This document shows positions 2,020 through 20,367 of a stretch of 64,000 nucleotides of DNA, piece by piece. The translations under genes were made by a program, and so were the position numbers. The notes below the pieces were generated by a model. That model was not told the DNA's origin. It worked only from the letters and a program-made list of their open reading frames with translations, and ran no database searches. This stretch comes from Diplonema japonicum (taxonomy: Eukaryota; Protista; Euglenozoa: Diplonemea): the NCBI GenBank assembly GCA_964019335.1, contig OZ025663.1, positions 620,001 to 684,000 of the forward strand, read 5' to 3'. Numbering within the stretch: position 1 is the stretch's first letter; every line of letters begins with the position of its first letter.

Positions 2020-2328
2020 TTTTTTTTGACTTGACATTCACTTTGCGAAGTTCAAAGTAAACAATTCCCCTTCGAGATTAAGACACCTGAAGCAAAGCGG
2101 TTCTTGGGGGGTTACACAGAATCAGTGAAAAGCTTCCGTACTTAAGAAATAAGTAAAACCTGTCGTGAGCATGAACAGGCGGCCCAGGCGCGTGATATTT
2201 TGTCTAAACCCCTCACCACATTTTTTGTTCCCATTTTTATTTTGTTACTCTTCTATAAGACTTGCATTGCAACCCTTCAGGACGAGAAAAAACAATATCT
2301 GTAAAAGAGCTTACAGAATAGAAAAAAA

Positions 2329-5300
2329 ATGCAGCGGCTACCTCTGCTGCTTCTGCTAGCAGGCATGAGCGCAGCACAATTCACGGCTAAGTGCCCTGTT
2401 GTGTCAATGTCAGCAGCCCCAAAGGTCGAATACCAAGTGGGTGTTGAAAATGGCAAGGATGCGATTGAGTTCACGGTAACTATTCCAGCTGGTGGATGGG
2501 TGGGCATTGGGTTCAAGACGGGAGGCGGGGCGGGAACCACGATGAAAGACTTGGCTATGACTGTAGGTGATGCCACAGGTGCTATTTATGACACAGCGGT
2601 GGCTACTGGAAATGGTGCTCCCACTCAGCGCACTCTAACATCGCGTCTCACTAGCTTCGCAGGTGGCATTCTTAAGTTCCGTCGTGATATGGACGACGGC
2701 GTGTACACCATTGTTCCCTTCCTCCCTCTTACTGTCGCACTCGCTTCTGGCACAGGCACGGCATTTGGTACTTGGACCGGGCACACTGCCCGTCAATTCA
2801 TCGAGGACCACGTCTTCGCATCTTGTTTTGAAAAGACCTGTGACGGTGTTGGTCCAGCACTCACTATCCCCAGCGTTGTGGTTACACACGAGATCGGCAA
2901 GCTTGGCGTTGATGATGCTATAAAGTTCTCTGTCACCTTCCCCAACGGTAACTGGGCTGCCATTGGGCTCAGAGCGGCAGACGCAGCGCAAATGACCAAT
3001 CTCGACATCTATGCAATGGACTCTGCCACAGACAGCGTAACCGACTTCAATATTCAAACGATGGCCACGTCTAAACCCACTACACAAGATGCTTGGCAAA
3101 ATGGGTACTTTGTGAGTCGAACGGCAGGTGCCACCACTACTGTTGTGTTCATGCGAAGGCTTACAACAGGTGACACGAATGACTTTGACTTCACCGTGGG
3201 AAGTACCATCAACATGGCAGTGGCTACAGGAGCCGGAACCGTCGCAACGTGGGTGTCTCACACCGAAAGGGAAAAGGTAGATGTTATGATATCGACCTGC
3301 ACTTCTGCTCCAGACACTACTGCTCCTGATACACCTGCTCCTGACACACCAACTCCAGGAGCTGCTGTGTTTGTTGCTTCATGCAGCATTGAAGCCCTCA
3401 CTGTGACGATTGGAACAATGTCTGTATCGTACGAAGTTGGGATGATTGGTGTGGATGATGCCATTCAGTTCACTGTTCAGTTTGCTTCCACGGCACCCAG
3501 CTGGGGTTCGATTGGTGTGCGTGCTACTGGTGGTGCGGCCACCATGGCTGGTTATGACATTGTGGCCTTCGACTCTGACAAGGATGGCGTAACTGAGTAC
3601 AACATCCCGACAGGCAATGGCAAACCCACACCTGAGGTCACTCCTGGTCAGGTAACATTTGTGAGCAGGACTGTCGGAACTGGGACCACCACGGTATGCT
3701 AACTGTAACAAATTAATAATCAAAAACAGGTGGTATTCTACCGCAAGATGACAACTGGCTCTGCCAATGACTTCGACTTCACGAAGGGTTCCACCATCAC
3801 CTTTGGGTACGCCACAGGTGCTGGGTCGGCCACGACTGACACCTGGACAGGACACACCAGCAGGGAGAAGCAGGATGTGATCTTGAAGACCTGTGACACT
3901 TCTGCTCCTGACACTTCTGCCCCTGACACACCTGCTCCTGACACACCAACTCCAGGAGCTGCTGTGTTTGTTGCTTCATGCAGCATTGAAGCCCTCACTG
4001 TGACGATTGGGTCCATGTTCGTATCGTACGAAGTTGGGATGATTGGTGTGGATGATGCCATTCAGTTCACTGTTCAGTTTGCATCCACGGCACCTAGCTG
4101 GGGTTCGATTGGTGTGCGTGCAACTGGTGGTGCGGCCACCATGGCTGGTTATGACATTGTGGCCTTCGACTCTGACAAGGATGGTGTAACTGAGTACAAC
4201 ATCCCGACAGGCAATGGCAAACCCACACCTGAGGTCACTCCTGGTCAGGTAACATTTGTGAGCAGGACTGTCGGAACTGGGACCACCACGGTATGCTAAC
4301 TGTAACAAATTAATAATCAAAAACAGGTGGTATTCTACCGCAAGATGACAACTGGCTCTGCCAATGACTTCGACTTCACGAAGGGTTCCACCATCACCTT
4401 TGGGTACGCCACAGGTGCTGGGTCGGCCACGACTGACACCTGGACAGGACACACCAGCAGGGAGAAGCAGGATGTGACCTTGAAGACCTGTGACACTTCT
4501 GCCCCTGACACTCCAGCCCCCGACACACCTGCTCCTGACACCTCAGCTCCCGACACACCAACTCCAGGAGCTGCTGTATTTGTTGCTTCATGCAGCATTG
4601 AAGCACTCACTGTGACGATTGGGTCCATGTTCGTATCGTACGAAGTTGGAATGATTGGTGTGGATGATGCCATTCAGTTCACTGTTCAGTTTGCATCCAC
4701 GGCACCCAGCTGGGGTTCGATTGGTGTGCGTGCAACTGGTGGTGCAGCCACCATGGCTGGTTATGACATTGTGGCCTTCGACTCTGACAAGGATGGTGTA
4801 ACTGAGTACAACATCCCGACAGGCAATGGCAAACCCACACCTGAGGTCACTCCTGGTCAGGTAACATTTGTGAGCAGGACTGTTGGAACTGGGACCACCA
4901 CGGTATGCTGACAGGGAACAGATCAATAATCAAAAACACAGGTGGTATTCTACCGCAAGATGACAACTGGCTCTGCCAATGACTTCGACTTCACAAAGGG
5001 TTCCACCATCACCTTTGGGTACGCCACAGGTGCTGGGTCGGCCACGACTGACACCTGGACAGGACACACCAGCAGGGAGAAGCAGGATGTGACCTTGAAG
5101 ACCTGTGACACTTCTGCTCCTGACACTCCTGCTCCTGACACTCCGGCCCCCAACACTCCTGCTCCTGACACCTCTGCTCCCGACACACCAACTCCAGGAG
5201 CTGCTGTATTTGTTGCTTCATGCAGCATTGAAGCCCTCACTGTGACAATTGGAACAATGTCTGTATCGTACGAAGTTGGGATGATTGGTGTGGATGATGC

Positions 5301-8300
5301 CATTCAGTTCACTGTTCAGTTTGCTTCCACGGCACCCAGCTGGGGTTCGATTGGTGTGCGTGCAACTGGTGGTGCGGCCACCATGGCTGGTTATGACATT
5401 GTGGCCTTCGACTCTGACAAGGATGGTGTAACTGAGTACAACATCCCGACAGGCAATGGCAAACCCACACCTGAGGTCACTCCTGGTCAGGCAATCTTTG
5501 TGAGCAGGACTGTTGGAACTGGGACCACCACGGTATGCTGACAGGGAACAAATTAATAATCAAAAACAGGTGGTATTCTACCGCAAGATGACAACTGGCT
5601 CTGCTAATGACTTCGACTTCACAAAGGGTTCCACCATCACCTTTGGGTACGCCACAGGTGCTGGGTCGGCCACGACTGACACCTGGACAGGACACACCAG
5701 CAGGGAGAAGCAGGATGTGACCTTGAAGACCTGTGACACTTCTGCTCCTGACACTCCGGCCCCCAACACTCCTGCTCCTGACACCTCAGCTCCCGACACA
5801 CCAACTCCAGGAGCTGCTGTGTTTGTTGCTTCATGCAGCATTGAAGCACTCACTGTGACGATTGGGTCCATGTTCGTATCGTACGAAGTTGGAATGATTG
5901 GTGTGGATGATGCCATTCAGTTCACTGTTCAGTTTGCATCCACGGCACCCAGCTGGGGTTCGATTGGTGTGCGTGCAACTGGTGGTGCGGCCACCATGGC
6001 TGGTTATGACATTGTGGCCTTCGACTCTGACAAGGATGGTGTAACTGAGTACAACATCCCGACAGGCAATGGCAAACCCACACCTGAGGTCACTCCTGGT
6101 CAGGCAATCTTTGTGAGCAGGACTGTTGGAACTGGGACCACCACGGTATGCTGACAGGGAACAAATTAATAATCAAAAACAGGTGGTATTCTACCGCAAG
6201 ATGACAACTGGCTCTGCCAATGACTTCGACTTCACGAAGGGTTCCACCATCACCTTTGGGTACGCCACAGGTGCTGGGTCGGCCACGACTGACACCTGGA
6301 CAGGACACACCAGCAGGGAGAAGCAGGATGTGACCTTGAAGACCTGTGACACTTCTGCCCCTGACACTCCTGCCCCTGATACTCCGGCCCCCAACACTCC
6401 TGCTCCTGACACTCCAGCCCCTGACACTCTTGCTCCAAACACACCTGCTCCTGATACAGTTGCTCCTAACACGGTTGCTCCAAACACACCTGCTCCTGAC
6501 ACAGTTGCTCCCACTTCATCTCCAGGAGCTGTGTTTGTTGCTTCATGCAGCATTGAAGCCCTCACTGTGACGATTGGAACAATGTCTGTATCGTACGAAG
6601 TTGGAATGATTGGTGTGGATGATGCCATTCAGTTCACTGTTCAGTTTGCATCCACGGCACCTAGCTGGGGTTCGATTGGTGTACGTGCTACTGGTGGTGC
6701 AGCCACCATGGCTGGTTATGACATTGTGGCCTTCGACTCTGACAAGGATGGTGTAACTGAGTACAACATCCCGACAGGCAATGGCAAACCCACACCTGAG
6801 GTCACTCCTGGTCAGGCAATCTTTGTGAGCAGGACTGTTGCTACTGGGACCACCACGGTATGTTTTGAATAAAGAACTTGTTTTAGTTTATTGGTTGAAC
6901 GTTTTAACCGATAAAGGACTATAGAGACAGAATTGCGAAAGTACGCAATCTTGTAAATCTTGTGGTTCCTTGTTGAGCATCCCTGCGAAGCCTTACTGTG
7001 GATGAACCATCATACGCTGTAGAAGCCGAGTCGGTTTCATTGTTTATGAGCCGAAGAAGAGGAAGCGTTATGGATTCAAAATGTCCGCATGTTGCATCAG
7101 ACACCGGTTACTCTCTAAACATGATTGTGTATACCGGCGGGGGCACTCGGTGGAAAGAGGCAGAGCTACTCACCTAATATCAGCACTAGAGTTACTGGAT
7201 TGTCTTTGACAATTGTTTTCGCTTGTCCCATTGATGATAGAGATTTACAAAGCGGGTTTCAACTGCATGGGGACTATCGGGAAAACCCGGAAATTACTAC
7301 CTATTCAGTGTCCGCATGGGTGAGCCGGAGGACTCGACAGGAAGCTGAAAACAGCCTCGCAAGGGTGTGACAAAGAAATCCTGTGTTAGAACGGCCTTAG
7401 GCGGTGAGAAAATAATAACCAGCCCACCCTGCACGCTGAATAAGCACTGCTTGCCGAAACCATGGAATCTCCGGATAGCATGTGCCCTTTGCATGAGTTG
7501 TTTCTCTCGAATGCTGCTCTACCAAGTTTGGGCGTCCAGGGCTGATATACTACTTGGGTTAAAGTACCTTGTTTTGTCACATGGACCGATTGACGCACTG
7601 TGTACTGAATGGTCTTGGAAAGCTCAGAATTCTATTTATTACCTCAGAAATCTAAAGCGATTCTACATGATAAGGAGGATGCGTAATCGCTGTAAATATT
7701 AATGTGGAATTGATCAGAAAGGTGACCTGGCTAAATTCCTTCTAATAGTTGTCGAGTTTTCAATAATATTGCAAGTCTGCCAATACCGACTATGCTAATC
7801 AACCTAAACTATTGAGTCAGAGAACTTCCCAAAGTGGGTCCCAGGTCCGAGAAGGCTACAATATTTTCGCAACACACAATAAGTACGATACGTAATAATT
7901 CAATATCCAGAATTGAAAAACGATCGATTTCCGTTATTTTCATTTGTGCGTGTTTGTCGTCTTTTTCTTCACGAAGGATAATAGAATAACCCCTAAAGGC
8001 CCGCGCGGACATTTTTGTCCTTATTTCAAAATTTGCTTTTTCGCTAAGTACTTTTTTTAGGTGGTATTTGAACACGGCCCCTGGACTTCAAAATATGGCA
8101 TTGTTGCGCGGTTTATTTTGTCTTGGAACTACATTTTGCGTTAAAGGTTTTGTTTTAATTGAAACCGGCAGGGTTGGCTTAAAATGAAATCAGATGGTCA
8201 AAATAGCAGCGAAAACGTGAGTCACCCCCGACTGGTCAGATAAAGAAGAAAAAGACGATGAGGCGGTCAAAGAGGGGCCGGAAACGATGTTTAGGTGGGA

Positions 8301-11300
8301 GAAATACTCCCAAAGGCCCAAAACATATCATTTCCGTGAAAAGGTGGGCTCAAGGCACCTCTAGGTGAAGCGGCCAATGAGGAAGGTGTTTTTAATCTTT
8401 TTTTTTTGCACACGCGGAACTTGAGCTCATAGTTTCTTCCACGAACGGTCGTTTCGATAAAAAAAACAGCGGAATCTGAATCTTTCCATCCTAGAGTACA
8501 AAATTTGGCTTGGGTTGGTCCTGTTAATGGGTTTACGCTCGGCACCGAATGAAGAGCTGGACAACAAATTCTAATTTAACCATCCGGCTTTTAAGAAAAT
8601 GAGCAAACCGATTCGTTGACATACAGCGCTACCTCACCTTTGACAACCTGGAAAACATTTGGAAAGCCTGAAACTGCACCTCATGTGCAGGTTTCTTGAC
8701 ATCATTGTCAACCGGTGTAGGACTGTGCCGGACCCCTGGCAAGTGGTTGTCTGTTGACGGCAGTGTTATCCCGACAACAATAAAAGTCATGGCACCACGA
8801 AAAAGCAACTCGGTGGGCATCAAGGTAATCGCTACATGTGACTCATAAAACGGTTACCTGGCAAATTTCAACATTTTCAGCAAGAAGTCCACAACACAGG
8901 ACCTAGTCATGCGTACTGTCATGGTCGTTTTTTATTGGGTCCTGGAAAGCTGTGTTGCCAACTCCTCCATAATCTGGAAGAAGAGCAGGGAATGTGGCAA
9001 AAATTATGGCTTCCTGAGCTTCAAAGAAGAACTTGTTGGCAAGCTTCTCACCCATGCCCCAAAAACCGATGGCACACACCCCCCGACAACACCGTCACCG
9101 ACCCCCAAGCGCAAACACGCTAGCAATGAGGATCCTCACTCAGAAATACCCAAAACGTCTCGATTTGACCTTAAATCACACCTCCGAGACCATGATGAAC
9201 GGAATAAAGGTGAGGAAGGTGCTCTGTGCTGTTCCTGGGTGCGGGAAGAAGGTGCAAACGTGGTGCCCCTGTTGCAAAACCCCCTTATGCAAAACGTGTT
9301 TTTTACCCTTGCATGCTACCCCAGCTGGAAAAAAAAACTCACAAGTTGCTTTTTTCATCCCACAGCCCCAAAAAGTCTCCAGACTGACCTCAATCCTAGA
9401 GTTCAGGGGCACCAAATAGGGCTGATTGCTGCCCTTTTTAGCCCAGCCATAACTCCACGGACCCCCCACGACAAGACCCCCCAAAATCGGACATAAAAAG
9501 TACCCCCTCAACCCCCCCTCTTACACACATAGTTAAGTGTTCTCATCTGAATCTGGCACCTGGAAATGAAAATTTTAGTACCGTTTACCCTTTCCTTGCA
9601 CCTTACTATGGTGCATGCTGCCCTTTTTTTGAGTATTTAAAGCAACAACGAAAATGGGGGGGTACCGTAGATAGGCTCCGGGCCTTTAGGGGATAAGGTG
9701 AAATAGTGGCCAAAAAATCAAATTTTAACAGCTTTTTTTCTGCCAAGGATAGAAGTTGCAATACAACCTCTGTCTATGAGCAACAAACTGAACTAAATAA
9801 ACAGGTGATGTTCTACCGCAAGATGACAACTGGCTCTGCCAATGACTTCGACTTCACAAAGGGTTCCACCATCACCTTTGGGTACGCCACAGGTGCTGGG
9901 TCGGCCACGACTGACACCTGGACAGGACACACCAGCAGGGAGAAGCAGGATGTGACCTTGAAGACCTGTGACACTTCTGCTCCTGACACTCCAGCCCCCA
10001 ACACTCCGGCTCCTGACACCCCCGTCCCTGATACTCCGGCCCCCAACACTCCTGCTCCTGACACAATTGCTCCAACCTCATCTCCAGGAGCTGTGTTTGT
10101 TGCTTCATGCAGCATTGAAGCACTCACTGTGACGATTGGAACAATGTCTGTATCGTACGAAGTTGGGATGATTGGTGTGGATGATGCCATTCAGTTCACT
10201 GTTCAGTTTGCATCCACGGCACCTAGCTGGGGTTCGATTGGTGTGCGTGCAACTGGTGGTGCAGCCACCATGGCTGGTTATGACATTGTGGCCTTCGACT
10301 CTGACAAGGATGGTGTAACTGAGTACAACATCCCGACAGGCAATGGCAAACCCACACCTGAGGTCACTCCTGGTCAGGTAACATTTGTGAGCAGGACTGT
10401 CGGAACTGGGACCACCACGGTATGCTAACTGTAACAAATTAATAATCAAAAACAGGTGGTATTCTACCGCAAGATGACAACTGGCTCTGCCAATGACTTC
10501 GACTTCACGAAGGGTTCCACCATCACCTTTGGGTACGCCACAGGTGCTGGGTCGGCCACGACTGACACCTGGACAGGACACACCAGCAGGGAGAAGCAGG
10601 ATGTGACCTTGAAGACCTGTGACACTTCTGCTCCTGACACTCCGGCCCCCAACACTCCGGCTCCCAACACCCCAGCACCAGACACTCCTGCTCCAAGCAC
10701 TCCAGCTCCCGACACTTCAGCCCCGGATACGCCTGCTCCAATCACTCCTGCTCCAAACACTCCGGCTCCTGACACGTCAGCTCCCATTACTCCTGCTCCA
10801 GACACTACTGCACCTAATACACCTGCTCCTGACACAATTGCTCCCACCTCGTCCCCAGGAGCTGTATTTGTTGCTTCATGCAGCATTGAAGCACTCACTG
10901 TGACGATTGGAACAATGTCTGTATCGTACGAAGTTGGGATGATTGGTGTGGATGATGCCATTCAGTTCACTGTTCAGTTTGCATCCACGGCACCCAGCTG
11001 GGGTTCGATTGGTGTGCGTGCAACTGGTGGTGCGGCCACCATGGCTGGTTATGACATTGTGGCCTTCGACTCTGACAAGGATGGTGTAACTGAGTACAAC
11101 ATCCCGACAGGCAATGGCAAACCCACACCTGAGGTCACTCCTGGTCAGGCAATCTTTGTGAGCAGGACTGTCGGAACTGGGGTGACAACGGTATGCTGAC
11201 AGGGAACAAATCAATAATCAAAAACACAGGTGGTATTCTACCGCAAGATGACAACTGGCTCTGCCAATGACTTCGACTTCACGAAGGGTTCCACCATCAC

Positions 11301-14300
11301 CTTTGGGTACGCCACAGGTGCTGGGTCGGCCACGACTGACACCTGGACAGGACACACCAGCAGGGAGAAGCAGGATGTGACCTTGAAGACCTGTGACACT
11401 TCTGCTCCTGACACTCCAGCCCCCAACACTCCGGCCCCCAGCACACCTGCTCCTGACACTCCAGCCCCTGACACTACTGCACCTAATACACCTGCTCCTG
11501 ACACAATTGCTCCAACCTCATCTCCAGGAGCTGTGTTTGTTGCTTCATGCAGCATTGAAGCCCTCACTGTGACGATTGGAACAATGTCTGTATCGTACGA
11601 AGTTGGGATGATTGGTGTGGATGATGCCATTCAGTTCACTGTTCAGTTTGCATCCACGGCACCCAGCTGGGGTTCGATTGGTGTACGTGCAACTGGTGGT
11701 GCAGCCACCATGGCTGGTTATGACATTGTGGCCTTCGACTCTGACAAGGATGGTGTAACTGAGTACAACATCCCGACAGGCAATGGCAAACCCACACCTG
11801 AGGTCACTCCTGGTCAGGTAACATTTGTGAGCAGGACTGTTGGAACTGGGGTGACAACGGTATGCTGACAGGGAACAAATCAATAATCAAAAACACAGGT
11901 GGTATTCTACCGCAAGATGACAACTGGCTCTGCCAATGACTTCGACTTCACAAAGGGTTCCACCATCACCTTTGGGTACGCCACAGGTGCTGGGTCGGCC
12001 ACGACTGACACCTGGACAGGACACACCAGCAGGGAGAAGCAGGATGTGACCTTGAAGACCTGTGACACTTCTGCTCCTAACACTCCGGCCCCCAACACTC
12101 CGGCCCCCAACACTCCTGCTCCTGACACTACTGCTCCTGCCACTACTGCACCTAATACACCTGCTCCTAACACAATTGCTCCCACTTCATCTCCAGGAGC
12201 TGTGTTTGTTGCTTCATGCAGCATCGAAGCACTCACTGTGACCACAGGACCTATAGTAGTATCGTACGAAGTTGGGATGATTGGTGTGGATGATGCCATT
12301 CAGTTCACTGTTCAGTTTGCATCAACGGCACCCAGCTGGGGTTCGATTGGTGTGCGTGCAACTGGTGGTGCAGCCACCATGGCTGGTTATGACATTGTGG
12401 CCTTCGACTCTGACAAGGATGGTGTAACTGAGTACAACATCCCGACAGGCAATGGCAAACCCACACCTGAGGTCACTCCTGGTCAGGTAACATTTGTGAG
12501 CAGGACTGTTGGAACTGGGGTGACAACGGTATGCTGACAGGGAACAAATCAATAATCAAAAACACAGGTGGTATTCTACCGCAAGATGACAACTGGCTCT
12601 GCCAATGACTTCGACTTCACAAAGGGTTCCACCATCACCTTTGGGTACGCCACAGGTGCTGGGTCGGCCACGACTGACACCTGGACAGGACACACCAGCA
12701 GGGAGAAGCAGGATGTAACCTTGAAGACCTGTGACACTGTTGCCCCTACTGATGCTCCTACCACTCTGGCTCCAACAGGAATTCCTGGTGTTCCTCCTAC
12801 AGCGGTACCGACTGGTGCACCGAACACGGATGCCCCTCCAACCCAGGTACCTGCTACATACGTTCCTGGAACACCGCCTACTCTTGTTCCGAGAACACTT
12901 ATCCCTGCGACCTTAACACCTGGTGATACAATGTCTCCACCCGTTACATTTACACCTGGTGTCCCGCCAACTCCTGCACCTCCTGTTCCTTTTGTCGCAT
13001 ACTGCGGCCCGTTCCCTGTGGATACTAGGAATTCCGACATTTCGGTGCAGTACTGGATGGGTAAGGTGAATGGTGCATGGAACATACAGTTCGATGTTAA
13101 CTTTGTCATGGAGCCCGGTTTCGCAACGAAGAGTACGGCGACCTATGCGGCGCTCGGGTTCAGGGATGTGAAAGCGACCTATACTGGGATGAAAGATTTG
13201 GACATCATGGCGATCGACTCGTTTAACACTGACGATGTCACGGACTTTGAAGTGGCAACTGGCAATGGCAAACCTGTGCGCGACGTGTTCCAGCACGGTG
13301 TTGTTACAATGACAACAGCAGTGCCTGGATTTAGAAACGTATGTATTATCATAATTTTTGTACACAACCGCAGACGACGTTCTATAGAGCACTCGACACT
13401 CGCGACGCAAAGGACTACATCTTGGTCAGGGGGACAAAGATAAACTTGGCGTGGGCCATTGGTAAGGGTACCGCAGGCGACACATGGAGCAAGCACACTG
13501 CAACGGGTTTAGTAGACATTATGCTGCACACGTGTGCTGCCCCCACAGATTCCCCTGCCACCTACGCGCCGCTTGGCCCCAATGACACCAACCCTCCTCA
13601 AACGTTGGTACCGCGAACGAGTATTCCTAATACGTGGGCCCCTGGTGTCCCGGGAACTTACGCACCCCCTTCGATGGCTCCAGGGACCACCTCGGCACCT
13701 GTTATCGGTACTTTTGTACCTGCATGCACTGCCCCACTTAGCGTGCCCATTGCATCACCTAGCATGACTCTGACCTACGACATCGGCACGGTTGCCGGTG
13801 AGTGGGCCATCCAGTTCACCATGACGTACCCCATCACAGGCCTTCCCATGGTCGACCCGCAGTGGGCGGCCATCGGTATTAAGAAGGGTAACCCGTCCTC
13901 CGTAAAGATGGACGGCCTTTGGATCATGGGCACCGACAGCAATACCACGCACATTATCGACTCGTACCAGAACCGTGGTCCTGGGGGCATTCCTAACCCC
14001 GACCCGATTCAGGATTCTGTGATGGTGTCGTCTGTCCGTACAGGCACAGTAGGAACGGTATGCAAGTTAATAAAAATGCTACTACTTACAGTCTGTGTTC
14101 TACCGTTTGCTGGACAGGTCGGCAAAGGGACGCACTGTGGCGGCATACAGCATGAATGACGATCCCATCGTGCGTGGGCAGAACCTCACGATCGCGTACG
14201 CCTTCGGCAACGGGAGCATGGTGATAAATGGGAATGAGTTTGACAAGGTGAAGTGGGTGGGTCACCCTGCCAACCAGGTAGGTATTATGCAGGTCTACAT

Positions 14301-17300
14301 TGAGACTTGCGTTGACCCCACTGGAGCCCCGCCCACGCTTGTCCCGGGTGCGACGGTTGCCCCTGACACACCTGCTCCGATGACGTCTGTTCCCATGACA
14401 ATGGTGCCCCTTGCGCCGAACCAAACCTATGCACCACCTACATACCCGCCTGACACGACTGTGCCAGTGACATCGGCGCCTGGGACTACCATGGCACCCG
14501 ACACACTGCCTCCCTTTGCGCCTCTCGACAACTGCTCTGCCACCATCAACCTCAACAACCCTACCATCACCCTGTCGTACCTCATTGGGGTCTCTGAGGG
14601 CGCCGAGGTTATCCAGTTCGAAGCTACCTTCCCGTCTGACGCGAAGGACACTTACTTCTCGATCGGCTTCCGCAATGCCTCAATCACAACAGGCATGCAG
14701 GGTCTCGACATTATTGCTGTGGACTCCGCTGGGATGGCTGCCTACGATCTCTACTCTGCTGGAAATGGGAAGCCTACGTACGACCCCTACCCAGACAGTG
14801 TTTTGGTCGGGTCGAGAAAGGTCGGCACCAACACTGTGGTATGCACGCTGTTTACATTGCATAAGTAAATACACACAGGCCACGTTCCGCAGACCTCTGG
14901 GTTTGGATGCGACGAACAAGTACGACACCGCACTCGGCCGTGGCATGACGGTGAACTTTGCGTGGGCGTACGGTGACGGCTTGGTGCAGAGCAACACATG
15001 GGCCAAGCACAGCGCTAAAGCAGCAATGAGTTTGACTCTTGTGCAGTGCTACAACCCAACGGATGTCCCGGCTACTCTCGTTCCTGGTGCCACTGCCATT
15101 CCTTCGACAGGAGCACCAGCGACAGCAGTGCCCAAGACACTGACGCCTGGCACCACTGCTGTACCTACTGCCGTTCCGACGACGCTGGTTCCTGGTACGA
15201 CATTGGCGCCTTCGACCCCTGTCCCCCCGGTCCCGTTCTTCCCCAGGTGCACTGAAATCACTGTGAACACGAGCAGCCCCAGCGTTGCAATCACATACCG
15301 CATAGGCAGCGTGGGTGGTGACGATGCTATTCGCTTTACGATGACGTTCCCAAGTGGTGCGTCCACACCTACCTATGGTGCTATTGGTGTTCGCAATGCT
15401 AGCACTCCCTCTGTAACTGGCATGGTGGGTTATGACATCTACATCACCGACTCCGTGTCTGATACCGTTTTCGACATGCAGGTCGCGACATCATCTGCTA
15501 TGCCGTCGCTGGACCCGTACTCAAGTGTCACGTTTGAGAGCAAGACGCAGACCGCCGTCGACACCACAGTATGCACCGAACTAATAATTATTCCAAACGA
15601 AATTGTGGCCACTTGTTGCGTCACGGGGGTTATTTGACTAAAGCGCCCAGAGCAGACTACTTTGCTTTTCCGAACTTGGAGACTAGTTGCACCTTAAACT
15701 CAAAGATTTAAACCGACATGGGCCACTGAGGTCTGGGTATTTTCTGTCCGTTGTATAAGAAATTTAGTTGTCCTCAGCTAAGATTTTCTTTTGGGACCTT
15801 TGTACCATCACACACGCACAGGTCGTCTTCTACCGCAAGCTAGCGCTTCAAACTAACATTTACGACGTGGGGCTTGCCCGTGGACAGGACATCGAGCTCG
15901 GGTGGGCCACTGGTCCGGGATCTTACCTTGCTGGTAGTATTGTTGGGCACTCGATGAAGGAGACCGTGCCGTTGACGCTCATTGAGTGCTATGCCGCGAC
16001 CGGCGTTCCTGACACCCTGTCCCCTGGTGCCACTGCCATGCCCACCATGACACCCGGCACCACTATGGCACCGGCGACGACACTGGCGCCAGGCACCACC
16101 ATGTCCCCAGCACCCACCTTCGTGGCTGAGTGCGAGCAGGACAGCCTCAACGTCACCAACGACGTGATCAGCGTGAAGTACATGTTTGGAAACTACGCAG
16201 GCACTCCCGCCATCCAGTTCGAGGTCACCTTCCCCAACACCAGCTCTGTCCCTGCATGGGCAGGCATCGGCTTCAAGCCCAAGGGTACTGACATGACTAT
16301 GGCCAACCTTGGCATTATTGCCTTTGACAGCGTGACTCAGGATGTGAAGGAGTTCAAGGCCGGTGGGAACGGCAAGCCCACCTTTAAGTACGGTGCTGCA
16401 ACGTTCGTGTCGTCGGCCTACGCCAACGGTGCCACCACGGTATGCGGCTGCGGCGGGAGGAAACAACTCACCACACACTCAGGTTACTTTCTTCACAAAC
16501 ACATCGACCACGAACTACGTGATCACAAAAGACCAGGAGCTCACCTTCGCTTGGGCGGCGGGCGACTACAGCGTCTTCGACGACACGTGGACACAACACA
16601 CGAGTGCGGAGTCCACGCTGGCAACGCTGACATGCGGCACACCGATTGACACGCCAACACCCAACCCGCCTACTGGGTACGGTAAGTTCGAGCCGTGCAT
16701 CCCATCGAAGGGCAAGGAGGTGATCAACGTGGACGAGGTGAAGGTGTCCTACGAGCTGGGGTGGTTCACGACAGGAGCGGCGGATGAAAAGACAGGTGAC
16801 GAGGTGATCAAGGTGACCTTCGAATACCCGGAAGGGTCCGCGAAGGGGTGGGTGGGTGTGGGCTGGTCCGCAGGAACAGCCAATAAGATGAAGGACATGG
16901 ACATCGCAGTCATCGACGAGAACTCGCAAACCATCTACGACATGTGGTCGGGGAGCACAGGGGGCGTCCCGGAGATGGACGGCGACATCTGGCCTGGCGA
17001 CGTGACCATCACAGGCGGGAAGTGGACCGTATCCTTCATGAAGCTGATGAAGAAAGGAACAGCGAAGGATGTCGGGTTCGATGGGGGGAAGGCTATTAAC
17101 TGGGTCTTCGCAAGAGGAGCAGGAGCAGTGACAGACGGCACGTGGACTAAACATACAACTGCCCCTCTGAAGGCCGCCACTGGCTTGGCGGTGGAGGATA
17201 TCTGCGCCATGGGTGCGGCAGGTCCCGAAGCCACGCCAGAGTCTGACAGCTCGGACTCGAACACGCTTCTCATCATCATCATCATCATTGTTGTCGTTGC

Positions 17301-17451
17301 GCTCCTGTGCGGCATCGTCGGCTTCTTCATCTGGAGGAACAAGAAGGAGCAGAACGTCGGCTACGCGGAGTTCATTGATGCAATGAAAGATGAGACCTTC
17401 CAAGAAGAGCCAATGATGAACACCACCTACACCAGCCCTGGTGCTGTTTAG
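2329..17451 (+). CDS. Giant type I membrane protein, ~3810 aa: signal peptide, 18 DOMON domains with Pro/Thr-rich linkers, one TM helix, short cytoplasmic tail; 16 exons
   Basis: Exons 2329-3693, 3730-4290, 4327-4902, 4942-5532, 5570-6145, 6183-6857, 9805-10419, 10456-11190, 11230-11859, 11899-12528, 12568-13338, 13374-14057, 14092-14838, 14879-15568, 15822-16439, 16483-17451. All are multiples of 3 and all 15 introns are GTATG...CAG. Each domain shows the DOMON pattern I-x-F-x-V...W/Y-x-x-[IL]-G...M-x-x-x-D...V-x-F-x-R...W-x-x-H. Signal MQRLPLLLLLAGMSAA; TM LLIIIIIIVVVALLCGIVGFFIW. Confidence 0.9.
7990..9692 (+). mobile_element. piggyBac-family DNA transposon, non-autonomous deletion derivative, inside intron 6 of the DOMON gene
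   Basis: TIR CCCCTAAAGGCCCG (7990-8003) and CGGGCCTTTAGGGG (9679-9692). ATAA lies directly outside both ends (7986-7989, 9693-9696). Internal transposase remnants present. Confidence 0.92.
8184..9330 (+). pseudogene. piggyBac transposase pseudogene
   Basis: Frameshifted fragments in the correct order: ILEYKIWLGLVLLMG; NRFVDIQRYLTFDN; PGKWLSVDGSVIP...RKSNSVGIKVIATCDS*NGYLANFNIF; VFYWVLESCVANSSIIWK; Cys-rich end CAVPGC...WCPCCKTPLCKTCFLPLH. The segment with the 2nd and 3rd catalytic Asp is missing. Boundaries approximate. Confidence 0.88.
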
Positions 17452-17537
17452 ACTGCGTCATTGTCCTCCATTGTAGGTAACCTACTCTTGTATTCCACAT
17501 CCCTAAGAATCGCTCGACTACTTTGAAAAAGAAAATG

Positions 17538-17573
<36 letters not shown>

Positions 17574-18404
17574 AAGAGGGAAAATCCCATCTTCTTTTTC
17601 ACCACCCGTCCTTTCGTGCCCCCTTTTTATTTAGTCTCCTGAAACATTTTTTTTTCGAAGCTGTAATAAAAAAAAAAAAAAGTAAAATAAAAATAAAACA
17701 GAAAAGGAGAGGGGAGGCCCCCCTATGTGAGAAAGGAAGGAACAGAATAAACATAGGAGAATCTGCTGGTCATGTTGGAAAGCACTATGCAGAAAGATAG
17801 ACCGCAGAAAGAGGAAAGAAAAAGAGGAGAAAAAAAAAAGTTCTTATTCTTCCTCCTCACAAAAAAAAAAAGAAAGTGAAATGAAAAAAAAAAAAAAGAA
17901 AAAACAAAAAACAAAAAAACATACCTTCGTACTTTGCAAACTCTTTTCTCCCCCCCCCCCCCCTCCCACCCTTCTCAGTCCTACCATGGAGTAACCATTG
18001 TCACTATCTGTTTGGGTTTCCTGTTTTTTTCTTTTCTTTTCTTTTCTTTTTTCCTTCCCTTTCATGTCCCTTTTTTTATGTCCCTTGACATCTCTTGTGC
18101 AACAAAATTGGGAAGAATGGTAATGGAAGTTAGTGTGCTTTTTTTTAAATGTCTTTTTTTTTTTCACTTTAAAGTAGAGACAAGGGACGTTATTACAAAA
18201 CAGAACCTCCTTTTATCTCATCTTTTTTTTTAATTCCTCAGCATATGACAGTGACAGTTATTTCAAGGAAAATAGAAGGCTGTAAAGAAAATAAACACAA
18301 AAAAAAAGAAATGATCAGATTGCAACAGAAAACATCCTCTAGACCACCCCCCTTTTTTTTGGTGTATCAGCAAAAGAAAAGAAGAGGTAAAAAAAAAAAA
18401 GAGG

Positions 18405-18440
<36 letters not shown>

Positions 18441-19659
18441 AATGTGTTATTTCTGTCCCTATTCGATAGTAGTAGTTACAAAGATTTCATGTCTTCCTTC
18501 TTTCTTTTTTTTTCCCCCCCCTTTTTTTTTCCTTCGTGATTTTGATTTTTCGTAATTCTGGCTTTCAGAAAAAAAAAAGAAAAAAGAAAAAAAGAAGAAA
18601 AAAAAAAAGAAAAAAAAAAAAAAAAAGAAAGTAGGTGAGTTTGCAATGCTTATCTCAAGATTTGTACAGCATGCATGAACCTAGACGCTAAATACTATAC
18701 TGACTCTTTCTTCTTCTTTTTTTTTTATTCTGCGTAAACAAGAAAAACAGTGTTACTGTTAAAATGGAGTCGAGGCAGCTTAGTCCGGCTTTTGACCGCC
18801 GACTTTGCACGAACAACAAGCCACCAGCTCTTTTTGTTTCTGTTTTTCTTCCTACTTTGAAGGTAAGGGGACACCCCGGGGCAAACAAGAAGGGAAAAAG
18901 AAAAAGAAAATGAAAAAAAAAAAACTATTTTTTTTTTTTTTTTTTTTTTTACTGCTAGCAGCAATTGGTCACAATATACCCGTGTTGAATTTATGGCTGC
19001 GTAGCAACAGTTGGTAGTTTTCTTTTTCTTTTTTTTTCTTTTTCTTATACACCCCCTACCCCCTTACTGAGACGAAAACCGAGTCGAATTTTCTTTGTCC
19101 TGCTCTGGGCATTCCTACCCGGTATTTTCTTCTTATTTTTTGTTTTTGTTTTTTTTTTGAAATATTATCCCTCCCGTACCCAGCTGCTACTCCAACCTCC
19201 TTTATTTGTTGATTTTCCATTGCGAAGAAATAGAAGGGAAGGAGGAAGTGAGAGAGCAAACAAATCAAACAAAGAAAAAAAAAAAAGAAAGCTAGAAATA
19301 AAAGGAGGAAATAAAAGAGCATACGAACGGTTCTTTTTTTTTTTCTAAGGTATATACTTGTCATTACGCAGCTTATTCTCTTATCCACCATTTCTCGTTA
19401 TCCTGCTTGCCCTCTGAGCCTTGCCTTTGGCCGAGGTAAGAAGAGCTCCACCAGCATTACAGAGGGCACAAGAAAAAAGAAAAATATTTCCAACCAGTAG
19501 GTCCAAACACCCTTTTTTTTACATAGTTTTTTTTTTTCTTCTTTGGTGGGTAGAACAGCTTACACTCTTCTCCTATCAGTGAAGAATTCCCCCCCCCCCC
19601 CCCCCCCAACACGCCCTACTGCTTGGTATATGTTATTTTCTGAGAGAAATGGAGAAAGG

Positions 19660-19691
<32 letters not shown>

Positions 19692-19925
19692 GCGAGAGGG
19701 AAGAAAGAAAGAAGGAAGATGAAAGGAAAAGTGAACTTTTGGAATAAGCTACAGAACAATGTGTTTTTTTTTATATCTCAACCACCCCCTCCTTTCCCCC
19801 ATATTCTCCCTCTGCCATCTTATTCTTTTTTATTTCTCTTTCTCTGACCTTGAACCCAAGGACTACAACCCCACACAATACCAATTGTTGAAGGATGTTT
19901 TACTTCATTCCTCGGATCTCTCACC

Positions 19926-19958
<33 letters not shown>

Positions 19959-20367
19959 GGTTTTTTTGACTTTTTTTTTTACCCCCTTCCCCCTCCCTTC
20001 CCCACTGTATGGTTGGTATATGTTTCCCCCTCCCTTCTATTTTACTTTCACTCCCTCTCTTTCCCATCTTTCCACTTTGTTTTTTTTTTTAAAGCCCCCC
20101 TTTTGCGAATACACTTTAACCTCGATTTCCCGTTTAACAACTACGTACGAGCAGTTTCCTGTTGATTCTTTATAAGGTCCCCTGATGCTGTGTGTTGTAT
20201 GTCATATGTGTCTGTTTCGCTCGTTTCGGTATCCGGAGCTTAAAGGGTGAAAGTTGTCCTGACTGGGGCCTGTACCTGGGGCTGATCCTGGTCTACCGGG
20301 GGGGCATTATTTGTCTCTCCGTGAAGTAAATTTTAGTAGAGTGAAATAAAAAAAGAAAAAAAAAAAA

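Follow-up and report, generated by a model that had tools for sequence, protein, structure and literature searches.

The window analysed here is a 64,000-nucleotide stretch of contig OZ025663.1 of the diplonemid Diplonema japonicum (positions 620,001 to 684,000, forward strand), in which positions 2329-17451 on the plus strand form one gene, coding for a protein with 18 DOMON domains that may represent a membrane-tethered string of b-type hemes. Three-frame translation of positions 2200-17700 resolves the gene into 16 exons and 15 introns (Table 1). The length of all 16 exons is divisible by three, none of them contains an internal stop codon and their summed translations amount to 3,810 amino acids. 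All of the introns are of the form GTATG..CAG, with an A-rich stretch preceding the CAG, and interrupt the coding sequence in phase 0 at the same position within a domain. Thirteen introns are 34-43 nt in length, intron 14 comprises 253 nt and intron 6 comprises 2,947 nt. The introns of D. japonicum measure 41 nt in the median, begin with a (G)/GTATG donor and show an unusual run of A-rich sequence ahead of the acceptor (PMC12621601), and 14 of the 15 introns of the DOMON-array gene agree with this published type. Searches and fold predictions were run per exon or per intron-free domain, never on the joined protein.

The encoded protein consists of a signal peptide, the 18 DOMON domains and their Pro/Thr/Ala linkers, one transmembrane helix and a short tail. 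The mature N-terminus begins with QF..C, a feature common to many members of the family. Domains 3-12 are ten near-identical repeats (92-100% DNA identity), each split by one intron of 36-39 nt with the exception of domain 8, which is cut by the much longer intron 6. The differences among these repeats are mainly synonymous, with a ratio of non-synonymous to synonymous differences per site (pN/pS) of 0.14-0.17. The more diverged domains 13-17 likewise carry one intron each (35, 34, 40, 253 and 43 nt, respectively). The shortest of the 17 linkers, which joins domains 1 and 2, has four residues and the longest has 90; with a mean length of 48, the linkers together make up 823 residues, of which 26% are Pro, 20% Thr and 17% Ala; they are probably O-glycosylated. 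The residues RNKK directly follow the transmembrane helix, in keeping with a type I topology, and are in turn followed by a tail of 38 residues. By this layout the product is a type I membrane protein, presumably exposed at the cell surface.

The Pfam DOMON profile (PF03351; cut-off 32.7 bits) matches exon 1 with 58.8 bits and exon 16 with 37.9 bits, while partial matches are obtained for the exons coding for half-domains, as expected. No cytochrome b561 (PF03188), ferric-reductase or other catalytic domain, and no CBM9 module, was found by Pfam in any of the exons. Each domain contains two Cys residues, one near either end and about 150 residues apart, and the sole extra Cys of the protein lies within the transmembrane helix. 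With this Cys spacing and no CxxCH motif, a multiheme c-type cytochrome could be rejected. The original prediction, made from the sequence alone, had described a single spliced protein of about 3810 residues with 18 DOMON domains, a signal peptide and one transmembrane segment, lacking cytochrome b561 and catalytic domains and with every domain bracketed by one Cys at each end. The exon model, the Pfam scan and a motif scan of every exon agree with this description in each of these respects.

Fold of the domains and conservation of the Met and His residues

The motif scan also reproduced exactly the predicted series of putative heme ligands. In order along the protein, the Met occurs in TMKDL, QMTNLD, TMAGYD (ten times), GMKDLD, KMDGLW, GMQGLD, GMVGYD, TMANLG and KMKDMD, and the His in WTGH, WVSH, WTGH (ten times), WSKH, WVGH, WAKH, IVGH, WTQH and WTKH. 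A family hidden Markov model, trained on 16 single domains (alignment A1), retrieved 129 full-length domains that belong to 51 related proteins. The Met is kept in 126 (98%) and the His in 125 (97%) of these domains, at a mean column identity of about 25%. When the DOMON domains of the genome's ferric reductase and of its monooxygenase resembling dopamine beta-hydroxylase (DBH) were added in a second alignment of 18 sequences, G46, M55 and H144 (domain 2 numbering) were the only invariant columns. The conservation of Met and His in these alignments thus exceeds chance expectation.

AlphaFold2 predicted a beta-sandwich both for domain 2, with a mean local confidence (pLDDT) of 89.1 and a predicted template-modelling score (pTM) of 0.86, and for domain 18 (pLDDT 77.4). 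The closest structural match of the domain 2 model is the DOMON domain of human DBH (4zel; Z 15.1, root-mean-square deviation 2.7 A over 143 residues), followed by the heme-b domains of pyranose dehydrogenase (Z 13.7), ethylbenzene dehydrogenase gamma (13.1), cellobiose dehydrogenase (CDH; 12.8) and NxrC (12.7). The same order of matches was obtained with the domain 18 model, for which the DBH domain scores Z 13.6. Across both models CBM9 scores 8.1-9.0, below every cytochrome-type domain (Z 9.9-13.7), and a CBM9-like sugar-binding module was rejected on these lower scores. The best match is therefore not to a sugar-binding DOMON family, the outcome that the original prediction had named as speaking against it. 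On the basis of the profile matches and the models, the domains are of the DOMON type and share the fold of the DBH domain and the heme-b cytochromes.

The equivalence of the family Met to a known heme ligand could be approached through a distant relative, P0041, which matches the Pfam CDH-cyt family at 2e-26; no direct match to this family was found in the 18-DOMON protein. The family Met column corresponds to M778 of P0041, which HMMER pairs, although weakly (E-value 0.09), with Met74 of the Myriococcum CDH (4qi3_A), a residue we take to be a heme ligand. For this structure, PMC10784544 supports His176 only as ligand. In the structural alignment of domain 2 with 1d7c, the Met lies 51 residues from the start of the alignment, as compared to 53 for Met65. 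The His lies 15 residues before its end, as compared to 17 for His163, which is a positional agreement only. Searches of the PDB sequences with two family profiles and with P0041 returned only NxrC, DBH and a short CDH stretch, and no alignment spans the His. The equivalence of the family Met to the CDH heme ligand Met (Met65 in Phanerochaete chrysosporium, Met74 in M. thermophilum, 4qi3) is supported by these comparisons, and it is suggested by the sequences and models that all 18 domains may each hold a heme b between Met and His.

Intron 6 and the integrity of the gene

With 2,947 nt, as compared to the genome median of 41 nt, intron 6 raises the question of whether the 18 domains are still expressed as one polypeptide. 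It holds two dispersed repeats, the older of which occurs in at least 35 genome copies, while the younger, a piggyBac-like non-autonomous element, occurs in at least 40. The latter is flanked by ATAA and contains a decayed open reading frame (ORF) with a Cys-rich motif typical of the piggyBac transposase C-terminus. Were the gene split by these insertions, a secreted protein of about 7.6 domains ending just after exon 6 would result, perhaps along with a useless downstream transcript. In addition to the unusual size and content of the intron, two further observations speak for such a split. The joint of exons 6 and 7 was found in none of the public sequencing runs, which are available as contigs, and no D. 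japonicum transcriptome protein was returned for either the N-terminus or exon 16: a search of representative sequences with domains 1-2 gave no match above 43% identity, while the exon 16 search gave no match in the searched length range and no transcriptome-derived copy of the gene surfaced. The absence of the exon 6/7 junction from the RNA contigs (5570-11190) says little, however, as most 31-mers of the repeats are non-unique and the contigs drop rare variants.

Several lines of evidence instead point to splicing. The donor and acceptor of intron 6 are intact, and the small intron that preceded the insertions has kept its A-rich 3' portion. Runs X3 and X7 are DNA, with contigs that span introns, whereas run X8 is RNA-like and contains an exon-exon joint from which the GT..AG intron is gone. 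Exons on both sides of intron 6 are covered in X8, including a linker specific to exon 8, while the intron stretch 6886-7449 is uncovered in X8 but covered by both DNA runs. Further downstream (12568-17451), 0.89 of the sampled 31-mers are present in X8, as compared to a calculated share of 0.886 with all five introns in that region removed. The ten exons downstream of intron 6 (6.9 kb coding) contain neither a stop nor a frameshift, despite the presence of an older repeat that shares only 78-89% identity with its copies. A repeat that has diverged by more than 10% from its copies next to exons that remain open suggests selection since the insertion and thus favours splicing, and the repeats 3' of intron 6 show purifying selection like those 5' of it. 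In one paralogue, an intron of 356 nt has been spliced out in a protein derived from a transcript. A paralogous locus, L014, and the Trinity-derived D. japonicum protein P0019 (EukProt) share 100% identity over a stretch of 1,215 residues. A division of the gene by its intron 6 insertions is consequently considered unlikely. The gene is apparently intact, and its sequence is likely to specify a single 18-domain product.

Related proteins and redox genes in the genome

Domains 1-2 match only 41 proteins among 1.84 billion representatives, most of which are very large proteins with multiple DOMON domains, either from diplonemids (Flectonema, Rhynchopus) or from other assemblies. In several of the relatives, DOMON domains of this type are joined to electron-transfer modules. 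Six DOMON domains in P0009 and four in P0014 precede a complete ferric-reductase/NOX module (Ferric_reduct, FAD and NAD domains), and the N-terminal DOMON domains of P0009 are those most similar to the 18-DOMON gene. D. japonicum itself encodes a comparable protein on contig 116 (L030:2406-7307, plus strand), with 1,611 residues, a signal peptide, seven DOMON domains that are nearly identical and all contain the Met and the His, and Ferric_reduct, FAD and NAD(P)H domains. This gene is located about 16 kb downstream of a 3-DOMON paralogue in L013, and another DOMON-reductase is encoded on contig 7. The largest array found is that of P0008 (JGI/IMG, 4,632 aa), where 20 DOMON domains, 16 of them near-identical, are followed by a cytochrome b5 and an FAD-binding oxidoreductase domain. 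Uncharacterised relatives contain 9, 10 and 20 DOMON domains and a tunicate protein contains 12, while in the paralogue L014 a single DOMON domain is joined to fasciclin adhesion repeats. A tail motif, Y-x-[EDNQ]-F-[VIC]-x-x-M, is situated about 10 residues past the membrane in the 18-DOMON protein as well as in P0004, P0005, P0007, P0011, P0012, P0016 and P0022, and its Y-x-x-F core could be a YxxPhi endocytic or sorting signal.

Three further loci of the D. japonicum genome were observed to combine related modules in other ways. Part of a very long ORF on contig 34 (L031:6095-10000, minus strand) codes for the N- and C-domains of a DBH/PHM-like copper type II monooxygenase, among which lie three DOMON domains that contain both Met and His. 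In a paralogue on contig 67 (L016:3536-6925, minus strand), N-terminal repeats are followed by one DOMON domain, a small module rich in Cys and similar to fibronectin type II or kringle domains, and a multi-pass membrane region. Two adjacent ORFs on contig 42 (L032:1582-5163 and L032:5192-7999, both minus strand) code for cytochrome b561 (the first ORF), cytochrome b5 and an adenylate/guanylate cyclase domain, and it is possible, judging by this domain content, that the pair constitutes a redox-sensing cyclase.

At the level of the whole genome, at least 27 Ferric_reduct and at least nine cytochrome b561 matches were found. At least 50 full-length genes for lytic polysaccharide monooxygenases (LPMOs) of family AA10 are also encoded, many of them in tandem on contigs 13 and 58, while no AA9 LPMO was found in the D. 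japonicum genome. In the four AA10 LPMOs that were inspected, the signal peptide is cleaved before His-Gly-Tyr, and a Pro-rich linker and one or two CBM1-like modules are present. ALAD and ferrochelatase are encoded as well.

The long ORFs of the window all lie on the plus strand, as in the polycistronic Euglenozoa, and the gene neighbourhood thus gives no functional signal. The genes near the DOMON array code for a phosphoesterase, kinases, a methyltransferase and a cullin and are unrelated to it. Directly 3' of the array, long A-runs and a G+C content down to 0.35 are observed at positions 17526-17575, 17861-17919 and 18001-20000; this A-rich, low-G+C stretch is probably an intergenic RNA-processing region of the polycistron.

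Table 1. Features of the DOMON-array gene (positions in the window) and the AA10 LPMO genes inspected elsewhere in the genome
Feature	Position	Strand	Details
Exons 1-8	2329-3693, 3730-4290, 4327-4902, 4942-5532, 5570-6145, 6183-6857, 9805-10419, 10456-11190	+
Exons 9-16	11230-11859, 11899-12528, 12568-13338, 13374-14057, 14092-14838, 14879-15568, 15822-16439, 16483-17451	+
Signal peptide	2329..2376	+	MQRLPLLLLLAGMSAA, aa 1-16
DOMON domain 1	2383..2832	+	Intron-free; Met in TMKDL, His in WTGH
DOMON domain 2	2830..3306	+	Intron-free; Met55 in QMTNLD, His144 in WVSH; modelled
DOMON domains 3-12	3382..12732	+	Ten near-identical repeats; TMAGYD / WTGH; APDTP-type linkers between
Intron 6	6858..9804	+	2,947 nt; donor GTATGT, acceptor AATAAACAG, both intact
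Older dispersed repeat in intron 6	6924..7548	.	At least 35 genome copies, 78-89% identity
Younger piggyBac-like non-autonomous element in intron 6	7987..9696	.	Terminal inverted repeats CCCCTAAAGGCCCG; at least 40 copies, 91-97% identity
DOMON domains 13-17	13003..16635	+	Diverged; Met, His and two Cys kept
DOMON domain 18	16687..17211	+	Intron-free; Met68 in KMKDMD, His156 in WTKH; modelled
Transmembrane helix	17266..17334	+	LLIIIIIIVVVALLCGIVGFFIW, 23 residues
YAEF in cytoplasmic tail	17362..17373	+	10 residues past the membrane
Inspected AA10 LPMOs	L033:200-1363, L034:382-1536, L035:515-1888, L036:630-1580	-

A putative redox brush, its alternatives and known systems

The retention of Met and His, the cytochrome-type fold and the redox fusions in the relatives together favour a role in redox chemistry. 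The reading we prefer, and to which we give about an even chance, is that the protein is a giant membrane-tethered string of b hemes which acts as a flexible redox brush and moves electrons outside the cell. Each DOMON domain would bind one heme b non-covalently between the conserved Met and His, as in CDH, AIR12 and CYBDOM proteins, and would be clamped by one disulfide and strung on the long Pro/Thr/Ala linkers. Electron tunnelling operates over a distance of roughly 1.4 nm. Since a mean linker of 48 residues places the hemes beyond this range, a rigid wire is unlikely and a collisional brush fits better, in which the domains would pass electrons to one another by collision on their flexible linkers. 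A rigid heme wire was rejected as implausible on the length of the linkers (823 residues in 17 linkers).

The brush might be loaded by plasma-membrane reductases of the ferric-reductase type, some of which have DOMON arrays of their own, and might discharge to acceptors outside the cell, most likely Fe(III) complexes or particles or the copper centres of the secreted AA10 LPMOs. With the Ferric_reduct and cytochrome b561 matches of the genome, candidate donors are numerous. LPMOs require an external one-electron donor, and in fungi the DOMON-type cytochrome domain of CDH is their natural electron donor. The DOMON arrays and the AA10 LPMOs of D. japonicum may be linked in a similar manner, and no paper connecting diplonemids, DOMON domains and LPMOs was found in the literature. 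Taken to its full extent, this would constitute a eukaryotic form of extracellular electron transfer, from NAD(P)H through FRE/NOX reductases and an 18-heme brush, possibly 200-300 nm long if the linkers are extended, to AA10 LPMOs on chitin or cellulose or to particulate Fe(III), and would represent a membrane-powered replacement of the fungal CDH-LPMO couple. This complete chain is speculative and has a low probability of being correct as drawn.

A number of observations weigh against the redox brush. The protein itself has no redox module, and the donors and acceptors named above are guesses; no reductase or LPMO genes linked to the array were found in the window. The linkers of 20-90 residues exclude direct heme-to-heme tunnelling, perhaps not between domains 1 and 2. 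The best structural match, the human DBH domain, was crystallised without heme, and DBH has a Leu at the position of the family Met. The missing exon 6/7 junction and the lack of a transcriptome-derived match for domains 1-2 and exon 16, described above, are to be counted on the same side.

The main rival to the redox brush is a receptor that scavenges heme or iron, in which the 18 pockets would take up heme from sea water, prey or detritus for YxxPhi-mediated uptake, the heme being used directly or as an iron source, comparable to the multi-NEAT Isd receptors of Gram-positive bacteria and the fungal CFEM relays. Heme b would be bound non-covalently, the capacity of such a receptor would rise with the copy number of its domains, and a single anchor with a conserved Y-x-x-F is found in the 18-DOMON protein and in seven other family clusters. 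The lack of a redox module in the protein also suits a receptor, and Met/His ligation occurs in some bacterial heme-transport proteins. ALAD and ferrochelatase are, however, encoded in the genome, which makes heme auxotrophy unlikely and led to its rejection as a driver. The same type of DOMON domain is, furthermore, fused in three separate ways to electron-transfer modules in the relatives, and the characterised DOMON hemoproteins (CDH, AIR12 and CYBDOM) carry electrons rather than heme. Heme scavenging is thus regarded as rather unlikely. It is also conceivable that the protein is a structural or adhesive component of the glycocalyx, with heme-free DOMON sandwiches serving as spacers or as binders of ligands such as sugars on a mucin-like stalk, the Met and His being kept for another metal or ligand. 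With their high content of Pro, Thr and Ala, the 823 residues of the linkers are reminiscent of mucin stalks, the paralogue L014 combines its DOMON domain with adhesion repeats and the absence of heme from the DBH structure would be in keeping with this role. Sugar-binding members are also known in the DOMON superfamily (Iyer et al. 2007, as cited in PMC10784544). In the fold comparison, however, CBM9 and other sugar-binding modules fall below the cytochrome domains (Z 9.0 as compared to 12-14), the two near-invariant positions of the 129 domains appear to correspond to the heme ligands of the CDH-type cytochromes, and DBH, the heme-free match, itself lacks the family Met. A glycocalyx role without heme is on these grounds improbable.

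The tethered multi-heme array of the original prediction is partly supported, namely by the DOMON identity, the fold, the equivalence of the Met to a CDH ligand and the redox fusions. An array in the form of a fixed wire is implausible in view of the linkers, and heme scavenging is weakened as a necessity by the presence of ALAD and ferrochelatase. The original prediction knew of no characterised eukaryotic example of such size, and the literature likewise yielded no characterised protein in which DOMON domains are this numerous. The architecture is not unique, however, as is evident from the uncharacterised relatives with 9, 10, 12 and 20 domains. The heme-type DOMON is familiar as a kind, since plants, fungi and animals use heme-binding DOMON domains as single electron-transfer modules, while a transmembrane-anchored array made up of 18 DOMON domains alone is a variant not described before, though not a singleton. 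If heme binding holds true, no multi-heme array on a eukaryotic cell surface would have been described earlier than this anchored chain. In the ocean, diplonemids rank among the most abundant heterotrophic protists, and the protein may bear on how they obtain iron and degrade particulate polysaccharide. The combination in one genome of giant DOMON arrays, a large NOX/FRE-type family and about 50 secreted LPMOs yields a testable proposal for the powering of extracellular oxidative chemistry. Should heme binding fail, a strongly conserved family of giant surface proteins would still call for an explanation.

Among known systems, bacterial multiheme cytochromes such as MtrC and OmcS offer a functional analogy only: many hemes are carried on one extracellular polypeptide, with possible electron transfer past the cell surface, but their hemes are covalent c hemes on CxxCH motifs within tunnelling range, whereas those of the 18-DOMON protein would be non-covalent b hemes in separate beta-sandwiches on long linkers. 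The cytochrome (AA8) domains of CDH (1D7C, 4QI3) and pyranose dehydrogenase (6JT6) share the fold (Z 11.7-13.7) and the equivalent Met ligand position, and their heme-b domain is mobile on its flexible linker, as each domain of the 18-DOMON protein would be. The fungal proteins, however, have one such domain beside a flavin or pyrroloquinoline quinone dehydrogenase or a CBM1 module, and sequence identity is 10-15%. The plant protein AIR12 is a b-type hemoprotein formed by a lone DOMON domain that is tethered to the membrane (bioRxiv 10.1101/2024.12.25.630297). It resembles the D. japonicum protein in having DOMON as its sole type of domain, with neither a catalytic module nor a redox module in the membrane, and in its location on the outer (apoplastic) face of the plasma membrane, and has one b heme per DOMON in a Met/His-type site, as would the 18-DOMON protein; AIR12 is tied to extracellular redox and iron chemistry. 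It differs in having one domain and a glycosylphosphatidylinositol anchor, where the 18-DOMON protein has a transmembrane helix, a tail motif and long linkers of Pro and Thr, and the two are distant in sequence, connected only by Pfam DOMON and DUF568-type look-alikes.

In the CYBDOM proteins (HYP1 and CRR of Arabidopsis, SDR2/FRRS1 of animals), electrons pass from a di-heme module in the membrane to an extracellular DOMON heme, which reduces Fe(III). In the plant proteins this is the Fe(III) of the apoplast, and the DOMON heme has been modelled with Met90/His174 as its ligands (PMC10784544). These two residues of HYP1 occur in the same order as in the 18-DOMON protein, with a spacing of 84 residues as compared to 79-91 in the latter. 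The 18-DOMON polypeptide, however, does not contain a cytochrome b561, and its presumed electron donor would be a separate protein. The eFRE-DOMON proteins of Naegleria, Albugo and Phytophthora contain one or two DOMON domains fused to a ferric reductase, which have been read as electron-transfer modules (Zhang et al. 2013, PMC3591440). While the Ferric_reduct, FAD and NAD(P)H domains of these reductases are absent from the 18-DOMON protein, they show DOMON in the role of an electron-transfer module that a NOX/FRE-type reductase carries outside the cell, and diplonemids have versions of their own, in L030 of D. japonicum and in P0009 and P0014 of its relatives.

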